Origin: Guillardia theta CCMP2712
Lineage: Eukaryota; Protista; Cryptophyta
Assembly (NCBI RefSeq): GCF_000315625.1
Contig: NW_005434584.1
Coordinates: 249,550 to 313,549, forward strand
Reading direction: 5' to 3'
Length of the DNA stretch: 64,000 nucleotides
Shown: positions 3,269-16,327 of the stretch, in pieces
Position numbering within the stretch: the stretch's first letter is position 1
How the letters are laid out: each line of letters opens with the position of its first letter
Program-made: the position numbers and the translations under genes
Notes under the pieces: model-generated
The model's database searches: none
What the model was told of the DNA's origin: nothing
The model's input: only the letters and a program-made list of their open reading frames with translations

Positions 3269-5056
3269 CTATCGGCTCTCAGCTCGAGCGTTACACAGCA
3301 TGTTGTAGAAGATCATCGCAACCATGTTCATAGTCGGAGCCATCGCAAAGTGAAACCCGTCTGCTCCTCCCTCCCCTGTCGTGTCCACTCCAACGCTTTG
3401 AGTCGGCTCCCATGCGTCTATCACCTGCCAACCAGCCTGCTGGAACAGCCTCCTGTACTCTCCGTCCTTCTCCCTGAAAGCCCCCACGTCCCATCCTTGG
3501 TTCCTCTGACCTTGCAGCGCTACTGATGACAGGTAGTACTTTGCGGGCTCTTTGCAGCTGCGACCTGCGAATCTCTTCTCCCACCAGGCAAGGAAGTCTT
3601 TCACCCGGCCAGACTTGTGAGCAAACCCTGCATTGTAGATCATCACAGACACGTTGCAAGTCGACAGCCCCGCCTTCTCCGCTACCCCGTCCCACCACTG
3701 GCTGCCTGCTTCAGTCCATTCCTGGATGTACCTGAACGTGTACTGCCGCGTCCCCCCTGCCTTGCCCGAGCCTTCAACTACCCGAGTGATCATGCCGTTG
3801 GTTCTCTTCTCCTTGAAGTACTCTTTGACACTCTTCAGGTATGAAGGCGTCACGTCCCCCAGCCCCGCCAGGTAGGACAGCGAACCCCACACGACCCTTG
3901 CTTGTGAATCCCCGAGCACGAAGACGCTCTTGGAGCCCTCCGCCCCGATCTTGGAGAGGCATTCTTGTATCTCCTGCGAGTCATACATGTGATGTCGTGA
4001 CGACGATGGCTGAAAGAACCATCGGCTGGTTTGATTGGCAGCCGGCAAGATCTGCTCCATCTTCGTGTCCTCTCTGCTCAGCGCGAGAGGGTTGCCCGTG
4101 AAGAGCTCCGGGTCGTGGCATCTGGTGGGCGAGCAGGCATGGCGGAAGTTGATCCATCGCCCTGGCTCGCCCTCTGAGCTCTCAGCAGAGGGGCTGCTGG
4201 GCGAGAAGGAGAGAGGCAGGGACGTCAACCTGAGTCGCTCGGTAGAAAACTCAAACGGCTGCGGTGACGCAAACACGTTAGACGTGTTCTCGCAGTGTGG
4301 GAGGAGCCTGGGGATCTCGCAGTAGTCGCAAGTCCTCCGCTCGGTTCCTCCCAGGTACACAGACCCTCTCGGCTTCAGGATCCAACGCGCCTTCACCTCT
4401 ACCATGTACTTCCCACTCTCTCGCACTTGAAAATCGAGCTTCCAGAACTTTTCTCCGTTTCGCTCAATGGCGTGTGAGCGAGGAAAGACGATTGCTGGCC
4501 CAACGGCTCGCGCAAACACGGAGATATCATGAACTCCCACATCTCCGACCGCTGATGCGTTGCTGGTTTTCAAGCAATCAAACACGTACGCAGACAACGA
4601 GTTGTGCTTCTTCATAAACAGAACTCCAAGGAAAAGCTTCGCCTCGGAATACAGGAGCGCCTTGCCGCGACATAGATTATGGCGATGCTGATTCGGGGTA
4701 GCATGATTCAAATGCTCGCCACGTCTCTTCCATCTCTCGAACTCGTTGGCGCATTCCTGTCTCGATTCCGACAGCATCTGCATAAACTTCGGTAGACTCT
4801 CCTCAACAGAAGCTTCTTCGTGCTGTTCATACCCCGCTGTTCGCCTCGTGCTCCGTGAATAGTCTAGTCGAGTAAGCCGCGTGCTCCTGCTCACTCGCGG
4901 GACGAGAAGCCGGGAACGAGCCAAGGTGAAGCCTCGGAGTACGAGCAAGCAGAGGTACATCGTTGCAGCCGCCAGGCAGACTCTCCTGCTGCAACCCTTG
5001 CGGAAGCCCTGCTCCCCCGCACAGCCCCATCCTCCTCCTGTTGCCGCTCTATGCAT
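3269..5056 (-). CDS. NXPE/PC-esterase (TBL-like SGNH) family protein, probable type II membrane O-acyltransferase/esterase
   Basis: Long ORF with an N-terminal hydrophobic segment, an Ig-like strand (LDFQVRESGKYMVEV), a VFVLGDSQAR (GDS) motif and a C-terminal DGFH (DxxH) motif. Start codon uncertain. Confidence 0.7.
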   Translation of the reverse strand: MHRAATGGGWGCAGEQGFRKGCSRRVCLAAATMYLCLLVLRGFTLARSRLLVPRVSRSTRLTRLDYSRSTRRTAGYEQHEEASVEESLPKFMQMLSESRQECANEFERWKRRGEHLNHATPNQHRHNLCRGKALLYSEAKLFLGVLFMKKHNSLSAYVFDCLKTSNASAVGDVGVHDISVFARAVGPAIVFPRSHAIERNGEKFWKLDFQVRESGKYMVEVKARWILKPRGSVYLGGTERRTCDYCEIPRLLPHCENTSNVFASPQPFEFSTERLRLTSLPLSFSPSSPSAESSEGEPGRWINFRHACSPTRCHDPELFTGNPLALSREDTKMEQILPAANQTSRWFFQPSSSRHHMYDSQEIQECLSKIGAEGSKSVFVLGDSQARVVWGSLSYLAGLGDVTPSYLKSVKEYFKEKRTNGMITRVVEGSGKAGGTRQYTFRYIQEWTEAGSQWWDGVAEKAGLSTCNVSVMIYNAGFAHKSGRVKDFLAWWEKRFAGRSCKEPAKYYLSSVALQGQRNQGWDVGAFREKDGEYRRLFQQAGWQVIDAWEPTQSVGVDTTGEGGADGFHFAMAPTMNMVAMIFYNMLCNARAESR

Positions 5057-5551
5057 GCCACGACACAAGGAAGGGTCGTGCGTTTTCTTTCTTGCAGTAG
5101 GGCCAAGAAGAAATAAAGTAGTTTCGCAGGACAAGTGTGAAATACTTCATGTCTGTAACGGATACATAACCGGCATGTCCGGGATGAAGGGATCAAGAGT
5201 CGTCAAGTTGCATTCGGGCTCGACATCTGATCGGTATGGAGTATGACGACAATGATTTCTACTGTCCAGAAACATCACTACGAAGATGTTCGAATCCAAC
5301 TTGACAGACGCGCTGAGTTGATAGAGGAAGCTTTACCACTTGCCTGATACAGGACTGGCTAAGATCAAGGAAAGAGGAGGAGGAGGAGGCGGCGGCGAAG
5401 GAAGAGGAGGAGGGGGGTAGAAATTTGTAGGCAACAGTCAAGTAGTGGGAACAACAAAAGGGCTCAAACAAACAACATCGCGAATCGACAACACACATCA
5501 TGAGCGGGGACTAGAAACGTCAGGAGACACAGGTTCCCCTTGCTGTCCCCA

Positions 5552-8211
5552 CTAGGCCTCCTCCTGCTCCTGCGTCGAGTCCACATCAGCTGCTACCTCC
5601 TCCAGAGCCTGCTCCTCCTGCTCCACTTCCTTCCCGTCCCCCTCCCCCTCCTTCAGGCTCCCCTTCCACTGAGCTCGCTCCTGCGTCAGGGTCCTGCACA
5701 AGGCCTCCAGCCTCTCTTTCTGCTTCCGCATGCTCGCGAGCTCCTTCTTCGTCTGCTCGTTCTCCTTGCTGAGCTCCGAGGCGCTGCCGGTCTTGTCCAT
5801 CAGGTCCTTCTTCTCCTTCTCCAGCACCTGCACGACCGATCGCCGTCAGGCAAGGCGAAGTGGGAGGCACGACTGAAAAAGCAGGGGAGGAGAGGAAGAG
5901 AGGAGGAGCAGGGCAGGAGGAAGAGGGGGGCGGGGGTTGGGAGGGGGGGGGAGAAGGAGGAGAATGAAGTGAGGAGGGGAAGAGCAAGAGGAGGAGCGAA
6001 GAGGTGAGGGGAGCAGGGAGGAGGAGGAGGAGAATAAGGATTAGGTGGATAGGGATGAAGAGGAGGACGACGATGAGTAAAACAATGAGGATGCGGCGGG
6101 GGAGGAAGGAGGAGCACGGTGACCGATTGGACTTCCCACCTTGATTCTCTTCCTCAGCTTCTCCGTGTCCTTCTTGAAGGTGCTGAAAACCTCGTTGCTC
6201 TTAGCGAGTGCCTCCTGCATCACTTGCACCTTGGAGCCTGAAAAACAACAACAACAACATGTCACACTCTCCTCCTCCTTCCCCCTCCTCCTTCCCCCTC
6301 CTCCTCCCCCTCCCTGCCGCCCTCCTCCACTCCCTCCTCCTCCTCTTGCCTCACAATCCTTCCCTCGCTCGCCCCCTTCCTTCCTACTTTCCTTATCCCG
6401 TCCCTCGTTTCTTGTTCGTTGCTACTGCTCTTCTTCTCCCACAGCTCTCCTTCTCCTGCCTCCGTTGTCCTCCCCCTCCCTACCCCTATCTCTCTTCTCT
6501 ATATCTCTCTTCCTCTCTCTCTCTCCCTCCTCCTCTTCCTCCATCCCTCCCCGCTAACTCTCTCTCTCCTCCTCCTCCCGTACCGTACTGCTGGAACGTC
6601 TCCATGTGGGAAATCTGCTGCTTCTCCATCTCCTTCTTGTACGTCTCCGCCTGCTGGATAGCATCCTTGCAAATCTCCTGCGTCCTCTGCGACTTCGCCT
6701 CTGCGAGCTGAGAAAGAGCTTCAGGGCGCAAGGCCAAGGCAGCATGAGGAGGGGAGTCACTTGGCATTCGAGGTCCTTGGCGCGAAGTTGGTTCTCGTAG
6801 TACTGCTCCTTGACCTGAGGAAAAGGGTCAGGAGAGGAGGGGAAGAGCGAGGAGGAGAGGGGGAGGACGGACGAGGAGAGGGGAGAAGGGGTGAGCTGTA
6901 GAGGGATGGTATGATGGCTGGTTGCCTGTAGCGAGCGTTTGGAGGATGGGATGATTTAGGAGAGTTTTGGGGGAGGGGTGGGGGAAGTGATGACAGGATT
7001 GGGAGGAGGAAGAGGAGGAGGAGGGGTGGGAGCGAGTAGGAGGATTAGAGGAGGAGGAGGAGATTGAGATGGAGGTACAGGAGGAGGAGGAGGAAAAGGA
7101 GAAGGGGGAGGAGGACGAGGCGATCGAGAACGGGTAGGAATGAGGGAGATTGGGAAGAAGACAGGAGGAAGGACATGGGAAGATAGAGGATGGGTGGACA
7201 GGGGAGGGAGATGAACCTCGTATTTGCTGATGAACTCTCGGAGCTTCTCGCGAAGTTTGTCTGACTCCTCAGCCTCTGCCAGCCGATTCTGCTCGCCAGT
7301 CAGCTGGGGACCTGTCGGGCAACGTCGAGCTCGACCTTCTCCTGCTGCTCCATCTTCTCCTGGACGTCCTTGATGGTCACGTGAAACTTCTCGCTCAGCT
7401 CGTTCCTCCTCTTCTGTGGGACGGTCATCATCCTTCACCCTGTGCCGGCAGGGGAGGGGGAAAGGGGAAGGAGGAGGGGCGAAGGATGGGAGAGAGAGAA
7501 AGGGAGGACAACTCGCCTGCTCCTCCTCCGAGATCAACTTTGACCGTTCAAGGATGTCTTTGTTCTGCTTCTGGAGCTCCTTGCAGAGGACTTCCAGCTT
7601 CTGCTTCACCTGTTCCAACCATCTCAACGGGTGAACCCAAGTGCCGATCAAGGGTTCACTCACGCTGTTGACCTTGGACAGCTCCGCCTTCGCTGCGTCC
7701 CTCTCACTCTGCGCTTTCTCCAGCGATCTCTGCATCGTCCACATGCCCCGAAGCGCATGACGTCAGCAGACTGCAGCGGTAGGGGCAGCCATGCCCATAT
7801 CCTCAACGCTCCTCTCCTCACCTGCAGGTTCCCGTTGGTTCGCTCCATCCGATTGCACTCTTGCAGCTTGTCAAGGTACTTCTGCTGCAGCAGCTTCACT
7901 TTCTCATTCCCATCCGACATCCCCTCCAGCTGATCCTTCAAGTCCTTGGATGCCTTCTTGTACAACTTCGCTGCTCACCATCGCATCATCGGAGCTTCTT
8001 ACCAACAGCTCACATCATTCTTACCCAGAGCTTTCTCCTCGTCCTTGTCCTCCGACTGCTTCTTGTCCATCTGCGCTATCTTGGCCGCAAGCGCAGCCTT
8101 GAGGGTGTCGTCATAACTCACCACATCTAGTTGATCTCTGCAGTGGTCCCCGTTCCCCTCGTTGAGCTTCGCATCAGGAGGCGCGTGCATGGCAGCTTGT
8201 TCGTTTTCCAT
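5552..8211 (-). CDS. Taxilin-family coiled-coil protein (multi-exon)
   Basis: Exons encode KLEVLCKELQKQNK, KLREKLREFISKYE, QEALAKSNEVFSTFKKDTEKL and LEALCRTLTQER, all typical taxilin motifs; GT-AG introns. Confidence 0.85.
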
Positions 8212-8283
8212 CCTGCAAAGATGAAGTTCAATCGTGGGCAAGGACAGCTCACCATTCGTACACTTTACCAACTGTAGCCGTTC

Positions 8284-8856
8284 ACTCTCTCCCTCCCTCC
8301 CTCTCTGTCCCTGTCTCTGTCTCTCCCTCTCCCTCTCCCTCTCTGTCTGTCTGTTTTTTTGTCTCTCTGTCTCTGTGTCTGTGTCTGTGTCTGTGTCTCC
8401 CTCCCTCCCTCCCTCCCTCCCTCTGTCTCTCCCTCCCTCCTCTCTCTCTCCCTCCCTCCCTCCCTCCCTCCTGGATATTTGTTTGGAGGAATCTCGAGCG
8501 GTATGGGGTTAAAGTAAGAAAGTAATACTGATATTCTTAAAAGAGATAAGACGATTGAATACAACCAACTACAAAAGGATTTACNNNNNNNNNNNNNNNN
8601 NNNNNNNNNNNNNNNNNNNNNNNNNNNNNNNNNNNNNNNNNNNNNNNNNNNNNNNNNNNNNNNNNNNNNNNNNNNNNNNNNNNNTTCCCCTCCCTCCCTC
8701 CCTCCCTCCCTCCCTCCCTCCCTCCCTCCCTCCTCCTCCTCCTCCCTCCCTCCCTCCCTCCCTCCCCTCCCTCCCTCCCTCCCTCCCTCCCTCCCTCCCT
8801 CCTCCTCCCTCCTCTCCTCCCTCTCCCTCTCTCTTCCTCCCTCCCTCCCTCTCCCT
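8284..8856. repeat. CT/CCCT low-complexity microsatellites flanking a 100-N assembly gap (8585-8684)
   Basis: Seen directly in the sequence. Confidence 0.95.
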
Positions 8857-9189
8857 GCCAGTCTCCCTGCTGTGCCCCTCAGCTTTCTTCCCTCCAAATT
8901 TATTTTGAAAGTGGACTCGCTAACTTGAAAGTTCATGTTAAAATTTCATATTTCCAATTATTAGTGAAAAAATTGAAAAGCACATGAGAGAATTTCAGCA
9001 TACCGCATTCGGAGACTTCAATTTGCCAATTCAGTAGTGACCGTAGCCTACTCTTTACTCAAAGTTAAGTTAAAATCAGTACGAGGACAATCAGGAGAGT
9101 CGAGGAGGCTTGACCCTGACACTGTCGCACAGGCCAAACGGCGAGAAGAGAAAAGACAGCGAGAACCAAACCTAAACCTGCCGACTAAT

Positions 9190-9600
9190 GGCACGCGGCG
9201 GCGCGGCCGGGGCCCGGGGCCCGGGCCGCCGCGGCCCGGCCGTTCCGACACCGTGGCACGGTAGTACACTGATCCGATGGAGTCCGGGTCCGACCGTCCC
9301 GGCTCAGCCCGGCGTGCCGCGATGATGCCACGGTGCCCCCGGGGCCCGAGTCCCGGCCGCCCCGGCCCCTCCCCGGCGGCGGAGTCCGCCCGGCGCAGTA
9401 CGGTACACGGCGGCGTATAGACGGTAGGCCGCCGTATACTGAGTACCCGGGCCGGCGGCGGCGCCGCCGGGGCGGCAGTAGTCCGTAGCTGGGCCAGCCT
9501 CAGGGCCGGGCCACCGTGTGCGCGGCCGCGTGACGCCCCGGCCGGGCGGCCCGGGCGCGCCCGGCGGCGCCCGGCCGCCTTAATTAGTACTGCGGCGGTA
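9190..9600. promoter_or_regulatory. GC-rich, palindrome-rich island between divergent genes (putative promoter region)
   Basis: Very GC-rich, with dense GGCC/CCGG/GGGCCC words. Similar islands lie upstream of other genes (about 19185, 37405, 43950, 58185, 61610). Confidence 0.45.
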
Positions 9601-11183
9601 GTCTGTCATAGCCAAGGGAGGCGGAATGAGAAGCGACCAACAGTAACATGATTCCCGGTTTGAATCTCATCTCATCTCCTTGCCGCGGCGCTTCCTTTAT
9701 GTATCCGATCCCTTCACTGTCCCCTAAGGGATCCAAATCTGATAAATTTCATTCAATTTGTTCGAGTAAAATTGAAATTTGCAGCCAAACAAATTGATTT
9801 CGGTGTTGGGACCTCGAAACGCTGCAGGGTGCGGTTTCAATTTATCATTTTTCAAGTTGAAATATTTCGTCATTTTTCTAAATTTGATATGCAATTTTTC
9901 GTGCACCTGGTGATTGTTTGGGTTGAAGACAGTATTTTCGATGGGAATCTCTTGCTTTTAAATTACTTGGGAGCATTTCAAAGATAAAAGTCTATTCTAA
10001 GGTCCCTTTATACGCCCCCAGGCCTGAGAGCGGAGATGAAGATGAGATTTTCCATCCCCCGAGGACCCCCCACCCTCAAACGACACTACCCTTGCACACC
10101 GTACTTTTTTATCACAAAGAAGGGGTCCGTGAACCGGGGTCAAATATCTCATTGGAGGTAGGGGTACTTGGGGCGCTCTGGGTTTTAAATCTTCATTTTA
10201 TTCTAAGATTATATCAGAAAGCCCGAGATTTACCACACTTAAAGGTAATTAAAACTCAGTTTCATGTTTAAAACTCTTCTTGGGAGTTTAAAAACTATTT
10301 TACAGTACTTTCATAATAGTAATATAGTCTTCAAGTCATTAAATTGTTGATATGTTTGTTTTTCGAGTTATGAATAATATTTGTTAACATAAAACATTAT
10401 AATACTTGTTTCTAAAAGTCAGTCGCTTTTGTGATGCGGACCGTTGCGTTGTTGAAATGGAATGGCATGAGACCTAGCAGGTGGGGGTAGTGACCCGACC
10501 TCAAAGTACCCCCCATTTTCCACATTTTCTTCTATATGTTCAGGTCAAATGTAAGGTAGGGGTACAGTACCCTACCATCAAGACCAAGTCTCCTCATCGC
10601 GTTGGGGAGGAAGGAATGGCAGGGTGAACATGGAGGACGGGGGGAAGGGGAGTGAGGTCAGGGAGAGAGGAGAGGATGATTCACTCTCGTAGATGTTCTG
10701 TGAAGGAGATACGAAGTTGACTGTCGAGTTTGATGGCGAAATGAGCGCAGGACAAGGAGTTTGTAGGTAGATAATGGGCAAATGGAAGCAAAAGCATAGG
10801 ACGAGGCCTGTACTGCCCTCCAATGTGAAGCACTGAAAGGGTTTGGAGAAGAAAAGAGGAGATGATTTCATTCTGTTTGTTCCCTTAGCATGAGAGTAGC
10901 AGATTCGCTCGGTGGTTGGGAACGATTTCGAAGACGTCATGTAGTCAGCAAGACAGCGGCTAAAGGGTAGGGATGGAAGAGCTGGGGTTGGTCTTGGGAA
11001 CGGCTGCATATGTTCACAGTGAAGGAAACATGTTGATACGTTCCTGCATCTCTCATGCTTGTTTTGTTCCAGGGTATGAGACGGAAATGCACATTTCCAA
11101 GAGCATATAGCGCATCCGTACGCAAGAAAGCGAGTATAACAAGTACAAGTCTGAGGAGCATATAAGGCGGGAGAAGCAGCATC

Positions 11184-12345
11184 ATGGCTCCGAAGAGAGC
11201 TGCCTCGAGAAGTGAGGAAGGAGGAGTGAGCTTGAAGCGAGTGAAGGACGAGGAGAAGAATGGCAGGGCTGAGGTCGCTGGTACAATCAACGAGCGGGAC
11301 CTGGCGAGGCTGGGGGAGGCAACGGCCCTCGGCGCGGCCAAGGCGGCGACAGGGGGAGACAGAGGAAGCAGCAACGAGATTGGCTCCATCCTCTCGGGAC
11401 AGGCGAGCGCAGTGGCAGACTACACGGCAGCGATCAATCTGTTCTCCCTCAACGCAACTGGTGCTCACCCGTTCCACAAGGCACTCGCGCCCCACCCGTT
11501 CGTGCAAGTGGGAGCAGTCCCTCCCCCCAACCTCCCGATGCCCATCAGCACAGTCCCACTCGGCAACGGGCTCAAGGCCTCCATCTCCCCGGAGATCCGG
11601 TCGATGGAGGAGGCAGCGGGAGGAGCGTACGGGGGGGTCCTGCCCTCCTTCAAGCATCTCCCTTCCGCACTCTCAGCACAGTTCTCAGGCTCCTACGGGA
11701 CTGCTGTCCTCTCTCTCCCTCACTACCTCTCCAACAGCAACCTGACGGCTCTGACCGGCATCGACAAGACCCTCCCTGCTCAGTCGTTCCCCTCCAACGG
11801 CCTGCACAGCCCAGCCATGGCGGAGGCGGCGAAGGCTCTGAAACCCAGCCCTTCGCTGAGCAGGATGGAGAGCAAGGGAGATACCTCGAGCAATCGATCA
11901 CACGGGCCGTCGATGGACAGGTACGAGGCAGAGGAAGAGGAGGCAGATGATGATGATGATGGTGATGATGACGATGATGATGGTGGTGATGGTGATGGTG
12001 ATAACGATGATAGAAAGTGAACTGGACTGCAGGTACAAGAACAGGTGGTCGGATGACGAGATCCAGTCTCTCAAGAAGGGAGTCGCTCGTTTCGAGAAGA
12101 AGAACAAAAAGAAAGGGGAGGACAACAGCTCGGACAAGGGCAGGGGGGAGCAGGGAAAGAAAGGGGAGACAGAACATATGTGGGAGCATATCCTCAAGAG
12201 GTGATGGTCTTACCCTCGCCCTCCGCCGCTGACCCTGTTGCAGCTACAAGTTCCAGTCTTGCAGGACAGCAAGAGACCTCAAGGACAAGTGGAGGCAACT
12301 GAAGAAGAAGGAACAAGACGACATGCTGGGGGTAAGCGGAAACAA

Positions 12346-12407
<62 letters not shown>

Positions 12408-15400
12408 TTGCTCATCCCTCCTTTTCCCCTCCCATCTTCTTCCTCCTTCCTCTCTCATCTTTCTTTCACCTCCTCTACCTCCTTCCATCTCTTTCTCTTG
12501 CCGTGTCTTCTGTCCGTTCTCCCCTTTCACCTCTGTTCATCCTATCCTCCACCCCTCTCCTCCCCCCATCTCCACCTCTTTCCCTCCATCTCCTCCCTTC
12601 TCCTCCTCTTCTTCGATCTCACCAGCCCTTCAGGTTCGCGAGGAGGCGAGGAGGCTGCGCATGTTGGCGGTTGGGACCGGACGCAGCAGCGCGAGCAGCA
12701 GCAACACAAGCCAAGGGAACGGGCATAGCGGCGATAATGGCAGCAGCACCAGCAGCAGCAACGGGCATACGGCCAACACTGAGAGGGTAAGGAGAAGGAG
12801 AAGGAGAAGGAGGGGAGATAAGGGAGGAGGGGGGGAGGGGAAGGAGATACTTGGGGAGAGGAGATGGGAAAGTTGGAGAGGGATTGAGGAGGAGCTGCTG
12901 CTCAGTAGCAGGAGATGCTTGCTGACATTTTTCTCCTCGCAGGCGGAAAATCAGCTTGACAGTCCCGGCCAGACCTCCTCCTCCCCCCCGGCAGGGATGT
13001 CTTCCTCCGGGTCCACCAGCTCCCCAGCTCCTGTCGCCACGTCTTCGAGCAAGGGGCAGCAGGCGGAGAGCAAGGAGAGAAACTCTTCTCCCTCAAGCTC
13101 GAGCACGTCGGACCCCTCCAAGAACTCGTACATCGGGGGTGGGGTAGAAGAGAAGTGCAGGTCACAGGAGCAGAGCACGACGACCAACTCGAGCGAGAGC
13201 GGAGGAGTCGAGGGTCACAGCGAGGGGAGCGGGCAGGGGGAGGTGGCAAGCAGCGACATGAGCGGAGGAGGAGAGGGAGGGAGCGAGGGAGGAGAGGGAG
13301 GGAGCGACGGGGTGGGCTGCGGGAGCGAGGAGACGGGGGGGAGCGCGGTTGGGAGTTCTGGGATCGAGGGAGGGAGCGAGGGGAGCGGAGGAGCGGAGGG
13401 GGGGAGCGACGGGGGGAGCGAGTGGCGGGAGGACGAGTACTCTGCAGCGATGGAGACGGGGGAGAACGAGCCGGAGATGGAGAAGACGAGGAGGAGGAAA
13501 CGAGCAACTTCATGCTCGGGGCAGGAGGACAGGACGATAGGATGGGAGGAGAGCGGAGATACTGACTGGGCGCTGGCAATCGACATGGGATCGACATGCG
13601 TGCGCGTTTCGGTGAGTAGAGGGAGGATGAAGAGGAGGAGGAGATCAATAAGAGAGATGGTGGGGTGGGAGGAGAAGGAGGAGGAGGAGGAGAACAAGGA
13701 AGGAAAGGAGGAAGGGAGAAGAGAACAGTGAAGGAGGAGTTCATAGGAGATCATTTCAAGGAGTCTTACACTAGCTGGCAGCTCGTCGGCAAGGACGGGA
13801 GGCTGCTCGCTGGAGTGGAGGGGCAGAGGAGAGTCATCATGGACCTTCGCTCCCGCACCTTCTCAGCTGAGGAGTACCTGGCGGCCGCGTTCGCAGCTCT
13901 GGATGACACGCTCCTGCTCCTCCGCAAGCGCAACGCCATCATGAGCAGCTCAACGGGGAGGCAAGCTGAGATCTCGCTCTCCCCCCGCGCTGCCTCGCCC
14001 AAGGTCGCCAGCATCTCCTGCTTCGCCATGTCGCTCGTGGGACTCGGGGAGGGAGGGACGGCAGTCACGCCCATCTACACCTACGCTGATGCTCGAAACT
14101 CCGCGTGAGACCCTGTTGCTCCTGCTGCTCCTCCTCCTCCTCCTCCTCCTTCCGCTCTGTCTTCCTCTCTTTCTTCTTCTTCTTCTTCTTCTTCCTCCTC
14201 CTCCTCCTCCCTCCTCCTCCTCCCTCCTCCCTCCTCCTCTTCCTCCCTCCTCCCTCCTCCTCTTCCTCCCTCCTCCTCCTTCTCCTTCCTCGCTTTCTTC
14301 CACCTCTTACGTCCTCTCCTCTCCAGGTTCGCCAGCGAGCTCAAGCGCAAGCTAGCAGAGGAAGGCTCTCTCGACTTTGTGGAGAGAAGGACAGCACCGT
14401 TACAGTCCTGCTATGCTCCAGCTCTCTTCATGCGCCTCAAGCAGAGCGGAATCGACGCTGTACAGCCGGTGACTCTCCCTCCTACATCTCCTCCTCCTTC
14501 CCCTCCCCCTCCCCTCCTCCTCCTCCCCATCCTTCTCCACCACCTCCTCCTCCTGCACCGCCTCCTCTTCTCTTTTCATTCTCGTCCAGGTCAAGTCATG
14601 GAGCACTCTTTCCGGCTACTTCCTTTCTCAGCTCATCGGCAAATTTCAACCGGTCAGCAGCAGCACACCATCATCATCCTCCCTCCTCCTGCTCCTCTTC
14701 TCTTTTTCTCTTCCCTCCTCCTCACTTGCTCCCTCCTCCTCTTCCCTTTCTCTCTCTGACCCCGAGCAGGTGACCTTCTCGGAGGCGAGCTGGACGGGGC
14801 TGCTGGACAGGGAGGAGCTACAATGGCACCAGGGTCTCCTCAACCTACTCGGGGTCTCCCTCTCCTCCCTTCCTCCTCTCTGCGACGCCGACGATCTCTC
14901 CTTCGATCCTCTCCTCCCCTCCTTCGCTCAGCGCTGGCCCGAGCTCTCCCGCGTGCCGTGGGCTCGGGGGATCAGTGAAGGAGCAGCGGCGAGCGTCGGG
15001 ACAGGATGCGAGAGCAGAGCAAAGCTCTGCATCGCACTGGGGACCAACGCGGCCCTGCGCGTCTGCATCCCCTGTCGGGACAGGAGGAAGCCTGCGAGCA
15101 AGGGGAGCGGAGGTCACAAGGGAGGAGGGAGGAGCGAGCACTGGAAGCTGAGCAAGGCGGGGATGAAGCACAAGGAGGAGGCGGAGGTCGCGGAAGTGCC
15201 CAGGGGCTTGTGGTGCTACTCGGTCAAGCGGGACATGCAGATCGCGGGAGGGACGCTGATCGATGGAGGAAGCATCTACGCGTGGGGGCTGGAGCAGTTT
15301 GCTGGTGAGGAGGGAGGAGGGGAGTGGGGGAGGAGAGTGAGGAGGAGGAGGAGGGAAGGTGAGAAGAGGAGGAAGAAAAGGAGGAAGAGGAGGAGGTTGA

Positions 15401-16327
15401 AGGGGGGGACGAGGGAGGAGGAGGAGTGAAATTTTGTCTCTCAGGAGGTCTTGAGGGGATGGCTCGCCTTCAGGAAGAGGCTTCGGCCATGGACGCTGAC
15501 TCGCACGGCTTGACGGTCCTCCCTTTCTTTAATGGGGGATCGAGCACGGTAAGGAGGAGGAGGAGGAGGAAGAGGGAAAAATGATAATGATAATGATGAT
15601 GATGGTTGTAATGATAATGATAATGATGATGACGACGACGAGGAGGAGGAAGAGGAGGAAGCGGAGGAGGAGGCAACCTGATTCGTCGTCCAGGGTTTTC
15701 GGGACGGCGCTACGGGGACAGTGACTGGCATGACGCTCAAGACAAGCAGGGCAGACATTCTGAGAGCGATCATGGAGTCAGTCGCCCTCAGACTCCGCGG
15801 GATGTTCAACGCGATCCGCCCCCTCATGAACGAGAACGGGCTAGAGGTCAGACAGAGCCCTCCTGTTCCTCCCTCCTCCTCCTCCTCCTCCTCCTCCTCC
15901 TCCTCCTCCCTCCTGTTCCTCCCTCCTCCTCCTCCTCCTCCTCCTCCTCCTCCTCCCTCCTCCTCCTCCTGCTGCTGACGTCCAGCAGGTCTATGCTACG
16001 GGGGACGCGCTCTTCAAGTCTCCTCTCTGGCAGCAGATCCTCGCCGACTCCTTCGCCCTCCCCATCCGCATCCTTTCAGGCGCGACGGTCGCAGCGAGCA
16101 GAGGAGCCGCCATTCTAGCGGTGAGAGAGAAGAGGAGGAGGAGGAGGAGATGGTAGTCAAAGGCTGGCTTCTGATCGCTTGCTCGCAGTGGAGATCAATC
16201 GGGGAGGAGGCGACGGTGGAGCAGAAGGCAGAGACGACGGTGATGCCCGTTCCCTCCAGCGTTGCCGCGCTGGCCATGGCGTTCGAGCGGCAGGAGGCGC
16301 TGTTCAACCGCCTGCATCGCTCGTAGG
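11184..16327 (+). CDS. Telobox (TRF-like) Myb/SANT protein fused to a degenerate FGGY (gluconokinase-like) carbohydrate kinase domain
   Basis: Phase-compatible introns 11921-12032, 12201-12243, 12331-12633, 12787-12942 and 13612-13781. Myb: RWSDDEIQSLKKGVARF...WEHILKSYKFQSCRTARDLKDKWRQL. A S/G-rich linker in the same exon runs into WALAIDMGSTCVRVS, followed by FGGY motifs ISCFAMSLVG, TPIYTYADAR, TFSEASWTGL, GLWCYSV, GLTVLPFF and ILRAIMESVALRL; stop at 16327. Confidence 0.8.

Follow-up and report, generated by a model that had tools for sequence, protein, structure and literature searches.

A conserved cryptophyte gene joining a telobox-type Myb domain to a gluconokinase-like FGGY fold

The gene described here occupies positions 11184-16326 on the plus strand of the window, the whole 64,000-nucleotide stretch of Guillardia theta CCMP2712 DNA that was analysed. 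As judged from comparative sequence evidence, it is one protein-coding cryptophyte gene in which a telobox-type Myb DNA-binding domain is fused to a complete FGGY sugar-kinase fold, and this fusion is conserved. The FGGY half resembles gluconokinases, exhibits altered catalytic motifs and is predicted to form a homodimer. The favoured mechanism, in which a dimerising, ligand-binding FGGY half serves a nuclear, telobox-binding Myb, is given a probability of about 0.5 as a whole.

The architecture and its lineage appear undescribed, while the underlying concept, an enzyme fold acting as a sensor on a DNA-binding protein, is already known. A full-text literature search for FGGY in combination with Myb and pseudokinase, with cryptophyte, or with telobox yielded nothing relevant, and no match in the protein searches carries a precomputed Myb annotation. 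Architecture searches would miss the gene because public annotation splits or truncates it, as in Baffinella, and because no Pfam Myb call is recorded. Few eukaryotic regulators carry a DNA-binding domain in direct fusion with an enzyme fold that binds a metabolite, and cryptophytes represent an ecologically important, poorly studied algal group. If the kinase half binds a ligand, the protein would provide a compact route from carbon metabolism to chromatin; should the ligand-gated reading be true, it would be the first eukaryotic “one-component” regulator derived from the FGGY fold. A metabolic enzyme dimer would also have been recruited to a problem common to single Myb domains, the need for a dimeriser, which animals have solved with the TRFH domain.

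Gene structure and conservation of the fusion

The gene, as read from the sequence and its three-frame translation, comprises 13 exons. All 12 introns are of the GT-AG type and every junction is phase-compatible, which extends to the complete gene the compatibility that an earlier note on this DNA had reported for five introns. The exons add up to 3405 nucleotides, i.e. 1134 codons and a stop, and encode a protein of ~1134 residues. The stop codon, TAG, is located at 16324-16326; the earlier note had set the gene end at 16327, one base too far. From the N- to the C-terminus, the protein is formed by an N-terminal region with a motif resembling a bipartite nuclear localization signal (NLS), a Myb domain split by an intron, a Ser/Gly/Glu-rich linker and a complete gluconokinase-like FGGY fold. 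Exon 5 contains both the linker and the start of the kinase, AIDMGSTCVRVS, in line with the earlier claim that they share one exon. All searches were performed with single exons of the window gene or with natural uninterrupted open reading frames (ORFs) of its relatives.

An exhaustive HMMER search with exon 9 returned 806 relatives, and the five closest (~50% identity) deviate from the remaining ones in their catalytic motifs. The contigs of the closest relatives were then searched by tblastn with each exon peptide separately. The same exons were found in the same order, with a best E value of 1e-64, in five sets of sequences: L005, a Logan contig; L006, L007 and L008, three independent assemblies of one organism; L009, the scaffold MU646657.1 of GCA_026770585.1, which belongs to the cryptophyte Baffinella frigidus (listed as “Cryptophyta sp.”, Northern Baffin Bay); L013 and L014, with a 9.4-kb contig in which exons 2 to 13 are detected by tblastn and exon 1 by alignment; and L015, a TARA metagenome scaffold. 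Collinear exons are present in at least four other organisms, B. frigidus CCMP2293 and those of three kinds of marine metagenome contig. Identity to the relatives reaches 76-93% in the Myb helix 3 exon (exon 3, five relatives) and 73-94% in exon 10; it amounts to 47-71% for exon 2 (L006, L009, L013 and L015), 40-50% for exon 6, 51-88% for exon 7 and 49-60% for exon 13 (L003, L005 and L013).

Most splice junctions of the model are read through without interruption in one relative or another (slashes mark the junctions). Exons 2 and 3 are contiguous in L015, which reads ILKSYKF as the splice model ILK/S/YKF predicts. The passage from exon 3 to exon 4 is intronless in L005, L006, L013 and L015, and the junction QDDMLG/VREEA (QDDxLG in the relatives) is thus confirmed; to note, introns 3 and 4 are both absent from these four contigs. 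The junction CVRVS/LVGKDG is found uninterrupted as CVRVSLVNKHG in L013, the exon 5/6 junction is continuous in L006 and L013, and exon 8 is contiguous with exon 9 in L004, L005 and L013. All the junctions from exon 6 to exon 13 are spanned by P0002, a continuous kinase ORF located on contig L003.

Single ORFs also connect the two halves. In L006, one ORF (206-1504) connects Myb helix 3 through the linker to the N-terminal lobe of the kinase; a length-limited protein search with this ORF returned two relatives. In L015, a 639-residue ORF, P0152, covers Myb helices 1-3, the linker and the FGGY N-terminus, the called product beginning inside helix 1. The linker is 29-38% identical to that of the relatives and varies in length, yet in L006, L013 and L015 it never disrupts the frame of the domains on either side. 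The conserved architecture, together with the ORFs of L015 and L006 (the latter starting at helix 3), bears out the earlier proposal that the two halves form one gene and are not an artefact of merging. In a search for copies, paralogs and telomere repeats that covered 87,145,349 bases in 669 contigs, the gene was found to be single-copy in its own genome.

Exon 1 (11184-11920) encodes the ~245-residue N-terminal region, which is mostly of low complexity, and ends in phase 2. It starts with the bipartite-NLS-like motif MAPKRA...GG..LKRVK and terminates as RSHGPSMD/R; a Pfam scan of this exon identified no family. It is conserved in L013:997-1956 and L015:834-1781, which share the initiator Met (M-A/G-PKRA), the KR...KRxK motif and the RSHGPSxDR end at the donor site.

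The region is eukaryotic in character, with short introns made of strand-biased simple repeats. Such repeats occupy introns 11921-12032, 12332-12633, 12787-12942, 13612-13781, 14105-14326, 14469-14589, 14653-14769, 15305-15444, 15549-15693, 15847-15988 and 16121-16188. They are of several types: (CCTGCT)n at ~12350-12410, CTC/CCT in introns 6, 7, 8 and 11, GGA/GAG in introns 5, 9 and 12, and GAT/GAC-type runs in introns 1 and 10. A 497-codon open frame at 12238-13731 runs through intron 3, where it does not correspond to the frame of exon 3, and on through exons 4 and 5 with the intron between them. This intron 4, of 156 nucleotides, is in frame and devoid of stops, so its retention would insert just 52 residues. 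In the TARA ortholog (L015:3026-3352 and P0152), the equivalent of exon 7 is apparently skipped in the called protein, maybe as a result of intron read-through or of a deletion. Upstream of the gene, an ORF on the minus strand (window 6956-7744) weakly resembles a Taxilin-like coiled coil, with a match (E 1.6e-6) that stays under the cut-off; apart from it, no Pfam family was detected in the neighbouring ORFs.

The Myb domain and the FGGY fold

The Myb domain is encoded by exons 2 and 3. Exon 2 (12033-12200) harbors helix 1, a basic insert of ~28 residues and helix 2, and matches positions 1-20 of Pfam Myb_DNA-binding (E 0.044). Exon 3 (12244-12331) harbors helix 3 with the telobox signature RTARDLKDKWRQLKKK and matches positions 56-76 of Myb_DNA-bind_5 (E 0.008). 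The domain reads NRWSDDEIQSLKKGVARF, followed by the charged insert and then by MWEHILK/S/YKFQSCRTARDLKDKWRQLKKK. The signature (V/x)DLKDKWR, preceded by the conserved Arg-Thr, is found in exon 3 as RTARDLKDKWRQL. The earlier note had described this insert as a charged insertion between helices 1 and 2; each of the five orthologs that cover the region has it.

Uninterrupted by introns, the ortholog Myb domain of L015 (1871-2161) was compared to solved structures: its 17 matches out of 17 are the Myb domains of TRF1, TRF2 or zebrafish Terfa, at marginal E values (best 0.0036). Together with the exon 3 signature, these matches agree with the earlier assignment, and a TRF/telobox type is supported for this Myb. 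Exon 2 alone and exon 6 alone give no meaningful match among solved structures.

Exon 4 (12634-12786) begins with the segment VREEARRLRMLAVG, located directly after the Myb and followed by the start of the Ser-rich linker. These 14 residues are nearly invariant across the orthologs, L009 displaying one R-to-Q and one V-to-G change. The segment may be a fourth helix or a Myb extension. Plant telomere-binding proteins have such a fourth helix, or “Myb extension”, and the resemblance is to be taken as a lead only.

The telomere repeat of the genome is TTTAGGG: a four-unit pattern gave 811 forward and 964 reverse matches, against 0 for the control. The matches listed are mostly near contig ends and in the expected orientation, e.g. 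C2:105-188, C5:1227386-1227651 and C7:1226352-1226491. Several contigs of the assembly thus extend to telomeres or close to them. No second close copy of the telobox helix was found in the genome, in a search whose 29-residue query makes it insensitive.

The FGGY fold extends from exon 5 to exon 13. Exon 5 (12943-13611) encodes ~200 residues of Ser/Gly/Glu-rich linker and then the FGGY N-terminus with phosphate loop 1 (WALAIDMGSTCVRVS). Domain I continues with its first part in exon 6 (13782-14104), the segment GSLDFVERRTAPLQSCYAPALF, which includes a conserved Tyr, in exon 7 (14327-14468), and a short strand or helix in exon 8 (14590-14652). Exon 9 (14770-15304) terminates FGGY_N: it harbors the catalytic-base site, in the motif GISEGAAASVG (Glu at about 14973), phosphate loop 2 (LGTNAALR), a basic insert of ~45 residues and the start of domain II. 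Exon 10 (15445-15548) is composed of a helix and of HGLTVLPFFNGGSST, with GGS in place of the canonical GER. The FGGY_C core (TGTVTGMTLKTSRADILRAIMESVALRL) is located in exon 11 (15694-15846) and the adenosine-motif region (ATGDALFKSPLWQQILAD) in exon 12 (15989-16120), while exon 13 (16189-16326) provides the C-terminal helix (AFERQEALFNRL) and the stop codon.

Exon 9 matches positions 172-245 of Pfam FGGY_N (E 0.001), exon 11 positions 104-142 of FGGY_C (E 1.1e-5) and exon 12 positions 154-194 (E 3.6e-5). These collinear partial matches score 19.2, 25.8 and 24.1 bits, respectively, each under the Pfam cut-off because the exons are short. The ortholog P0002, a natural 485-residue ORF that comprises the kinase domain without its first strands, scores above both cut-offs, with 36.2 bits for PF00370 and 77.6 bits for PF02782. 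The window exon matches, the P0002 scores and the P0002 model all display the two lobes, FGGY_N and FGGY_C, in canonical order.

In NCBIfam, the best match of exon 9 is gntK_FGGY (gluconokinase, E 1.2e-8), ahead of xylulokinase and glycerol kinase. The TIGR01314 score of exon 9 is 34 bits, against a cut-off of 648 that a single exon cannot reach. The gluconokinase motif GER-x-P-x-W is absent from the window gene, where GER is replaced by GGS. The AlphaFold2 (AF2) model of P0002, calculated from an 87-sequence alignment, has a predicted local distance difference test score (pLDDT) of 89.5 and a predicted template modelling score (pTM) of 0.88. Its best matches among solved structures are the gluconate kinases 3GBT and 3LL3 (TM-score 0.79, E about 1e-27; 6e-28 for 3GBT), with xylulokinases and glycerol kinases next in rank. 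Exon 9 shares 40-48% identity with its nearest canonical relatives, and those that bear a species name are from oomycetes: A0AAV2YBH7 of Lagenidium giganteum, annotated “Gluconokinase”, and a homolog in Pythium brassicae.

P0002 is also predicted to form a homodimer. The model reaches an ipSAE interface score of 0.71, compared with 0.00 for the best control, at least 98% of the contacts recur from run to run, and the partner has a pLDDT of 81. In the calibration, 21 of 30 proteins whose solved structure pairs two copies of one chain attained the ipSAE mark, compared with none of 23 whose solved structure has a single chain. The predicted interface is encoded by exon 10 together with the last part of exon 9 and the first part of exon 11, and it includes the most conserved kinase segments of the clade.

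The active site and the possible function of the fusion

When exon 9 is aligned with E. coli xylulokinase (2ITM) and L. acidophilus gluconate kinase (3GBT), GISEGAAASVG falls opposite GGDNAAGAVG and ASDGYLSTIG. The window protein has a Glu, and not an Asp, opposite the catalytic Asp of these enzymes (GlpK D245 or XylB D233), a change that is conservative and does not amount to a loss. The replacements of GDG by SEG, GTS by GTN and ERS by GSS, all listed in the earlier note, are found again in the alignments with solved kinases and canonical relatives, the third as GGS at the GER position. Conversely, the supposed change from GG to GD in the adenosine motif is no departure: the nearest canonical relatives read ASGTAL there, which rules it out as a sign of decay.

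A table was made of the 55 residue columns that are conserved in at least 85% of 86 canonical full-length relatives, each exon fragment being aligned separately. The fused clade keeps most of these columns: structural Gly, Trp and Pro residues, the exon 7 Tyr, SEASWTG, RWP, DGG and the Arg of GTSAAxR. The Tyr is taken here as the equivalent of GlpK Tyr135. Among the columns that change, the catalytic Asp, present in 100% of the canonical sequences, is a Glu in six of eight fused sequences and an Asp in the other two, and the Gly that follows it (also 100%) is changed in seven of eight, the window protein keeping it. The Gly of RTG (100%), which falls in exon 7, is an Ala in every clade member scored. 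In the GER motif, the Glu (98%) is replaced by Gly in five of six sequences, L003 retaining it, and the Arg (99%) is Ser or Asn in every member scored.

The phosphate loops are affected as well. Loop 1 of the window protein, IDMGST, conforms to D-x-G-(S/T)-(S/T), and the first Asp is kept as the earlier note had stated. In the orthologs, L006 reads GAA, the Asp is a His in Baffinella (L009), and the Gly is an Arg in L015, where the loop reads DLRRES. In loop 2, for which G-T-(S/G) is expected, the window protein reads GTN, i.e. it keeps the Thr and alters the next residue; orthologs display GTS, SSS, GNT and GAN, and the Thr, conserved in 95% of the canonical sequences, is Ala, Ser or Asn in four of eight. 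In a phylogeny built from the exon 9 region and including 100 canonical relatives, the six fused-type sequences form one group, with a Shimodaira-Hasegawa-like approximate likelihood ratio test (SH-aLRT) support of 99. The stem of this group measures 1.06 substitutions per site, the median terminal branch being 0.65, and its root-to-tip distances range from 1.6 to 2.4, compared with a mean of 1.37 for the others.

Different lineages alter different ATP-site residues, and the fold and the other surfaces stay conserved, which is the usual signature of a pseudoenzyme. Catalytic decay of the FGGY half is somewhat more probable than its absence. The earlier description of a probable pseudokinase stands as far as it concerns the lost residues, 95-100% conserved in canonical relatives, and the lineage-wise decay of the phosphate loops; it is weakened by the acidic residue that is always kept at the catalytic position.

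In the favoured mechanism, the protein would be imported into the nucleus through its N-terminal KR...KRxK motif. The FGGY-like half would no longer be mainly a metabolic kinase and would serve as a homodimerisation module, a small ligand probably still being bound in its cleft. By analogy with the role of TRFH in TRF1/2, the FGGY dimer would bring together two single Myb domains, here on long flexible linkers, and the dimer would recognise TTTAGGG-like (telobox) sites arranged in tandem or in pairs, whether in promoters or at the TTTAGGG telomeres of the genome. Closure of the kinase lobes on a sugar acid, a sugar or a nucleotide may then modulate DNA binding or the recruitment of partners. 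A more specific version is tentative: a cryptophyte-specific, ligand-gated telobox factor, in which a gluconokinase-derived pseudoenzyme would replace TRFH and the pool of a sugar acid, a sugar phosphate or adenylate would directly set binding to TTTAGGG-like DNA in promoters or telomeres.

Several observations weigh against this mechanism. The ortholog Myb of L015 remains below the Pfam cut-offs, with 20.5 bits for Myb_DNA-bind_5 (cut-off 21.7) and 19.3 bits for Myb_DNA-binding (cut-off 24.4), because the basic insert splits the match. Its single-sequence AF2 model is poor (pLDDT 65), and a Foldseek search with this poor model gave no match below E 2.4. The homodimer was modelled on an N-terminally truncated ortholog, P0002, instead of the window protein, and its score may come from the memory that the model has of solved FGGY dimers. 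As to catalysis, all eight sequences have a carboxylate, either Glu or Asp, at the catalytic-base position; in the window protein, this acidic residue, the first Asp, the GST of loop 1 and the GT of loop 2 are all kept, so that residual or altered kinase activity is possible. Active glycerol kinases are also devoid of the GER motif, so its loss is not decisive. Finally, when a member of the canonical clade, P0008, was used as query against the genome of the window, only this gene and a distant FGGY gene on another contig were found. With no canonical paralog of the P0008 clade found by this query, the gene may be the sole possible supplier of the ancestral activity. The distant gene (G000:C32:538784-539143, minus strand) has a 536-residue open frame, 26% identical to the C-terminal part of P0008, and is probably a different FGGY kinase such as a xylulokinase or a glycerol kinase.

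These last points are shared with the best-surviving alternative, which is nonetheless rather unlikely: a kinase that still phosphorylates a sugar or sugar acid, though more slowly or on another substrate, and that the Myb would tether to chromatin or to the nucleus, catalysis being the point of the fusion. The invariant carboxylate, the retained parts of the two phosphate loops, the putative substrate-site Tyr, the SEASWTGLLD segment and the adenosine-motif region would all suit such an enzyme, as would a fully intact fold and a genome in which no canonical paralog of the clade was found. However, residues that are 98-100% conserved elsewhere are changed across the clade (the Gly after the catalytic Asp, the Glu and Arg of GER, the Gly of RTG), and the phosphate loops are hit differently in each lineage, with Asp to His, Gly to Arg, and Thr to Ala, Ser or Asn, which points to a relaxed constraint on ATP handling. 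The long stem branch of the clade argues in the same direction.

A structural telomere-binding protein is less likely again. This shelterin-like TRF analogue would use the FGGY fold as a dimerisation scaffold in place of TRFH, with no role in sensing or transcription. Among solved structures the Myb resembles only TRF1/TRF2-type domains, the telomeres are made of TTTAGGG, a homodimer is predicted, and no second close copy of the telobox helix was found in the genome. The weight of that last result is limited by the insensitive search for other telobox genes, however, and the cleft, with its acidic residue, the Tyr and SEASWTG, shows more conservation than a mere scaffold would require. Plant telobox Mybs such as TRB also act at promoter teloboxes, which counts against a purely telomeric function.

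The weakest alternative, an artefact of the gene model in which adjacent Myb and FGGY genes seem joined through a stop-free purine-rich linker, is very improbable and is rejected on the comparative evidence of collinear exons, single ORFs, splice junctions and an in-frame linker. The linker is indeed of low complexity and T-poor, so open frames come cheaply and a second frame is open over much of exon 5, but in five organisms it keeps the frame of both domains even though its sequence is only 29-38% identical and has many indels, and no conserved gene start is found near the kinase, whereas the Met of exon 1 is conserved. The public Baffinella annotation does split the locus (L009:4822-13839) into two hypothetical proteins, 4822-6304 and 10001-13839; between them, however, ~6665-9400 is left unannotated and contains the Myb helix 3, linker and kinase N-terminal exons homologous to those of the window gene.

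Comparison with known systems

The dimeric, ligand-binding Myb-FGGY protein favoured here would be a eukaryotic counterpart of the bacterial ROK repressors and would follow the dimeriser logic of TRF1/2, being a member of neither family. ROK repressors (NagC, Mlc, B. subtilis XylR) possess an N-terminal DNA-binding domain followed by a sugar-kinase fold of the ASKHA superfamily, which is no longer catalytic and works as a sensor that binds a ligand and oligomerises. The window protein shares with them the location of a DNA-binding domain N-terminal to an ASKHA-superfamily sugar-kinase fold, and the analogy is functional only. ROK repressors are bacterial, harbor a winged helix-turn-helix and belong to the ROK branch, whereas the window protein is eukaryotic and combines a TRF-type Myb, a disordered linker of ~270 residues and an FGGY-branch kinase fold, as the Pfam, NCBIfam and fold searches all indicate.

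With TRF1/TRF2 and the plant TRFL/TBP1 and TRB/SMH proteins, the window protein has in common a single Myb repeat, the xDLKDKWR helix 3 and the presumed need for a separate dimeriser to bind DNA well. In contrast to these proteins, it possesses neither TRFH nor H1/H5 and has a sugar-kinase fold instead; its Myb carries the ~28-residue basic insert and lies within the first third of the protein, whereas theirs is C-terminal.

The canonical gluconokinase-like FGGY proteins, those of Lagenidium giganteum and Pythium brassicae as well as the bacterial GntK/XylB enzymes (3GBT, 3LL3, 2ITM), display the same fold and domain order, and SEASWTGL, RWPEL, DGGS, HGLTVLPF and ESVALRL are shared with the fused protein. 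They are ~460-650 residues long, have no Myb and keep GIGDGAAAN, TIGTSAA and SGERAPGW, whereas the fused clade alters these motifs. Sugar-kinase folds have also been reused to couple sugar status to transcription in yeast Gal3, yeast Hxk2 and plant HXK1. Unlike the window protein, these act through partner proteins and have no DNA-binding domain of their own; Gal3 has a GHMP fold, and the hexokinases represent a branch of ASKHA different from the FGGY branch of the window protein.

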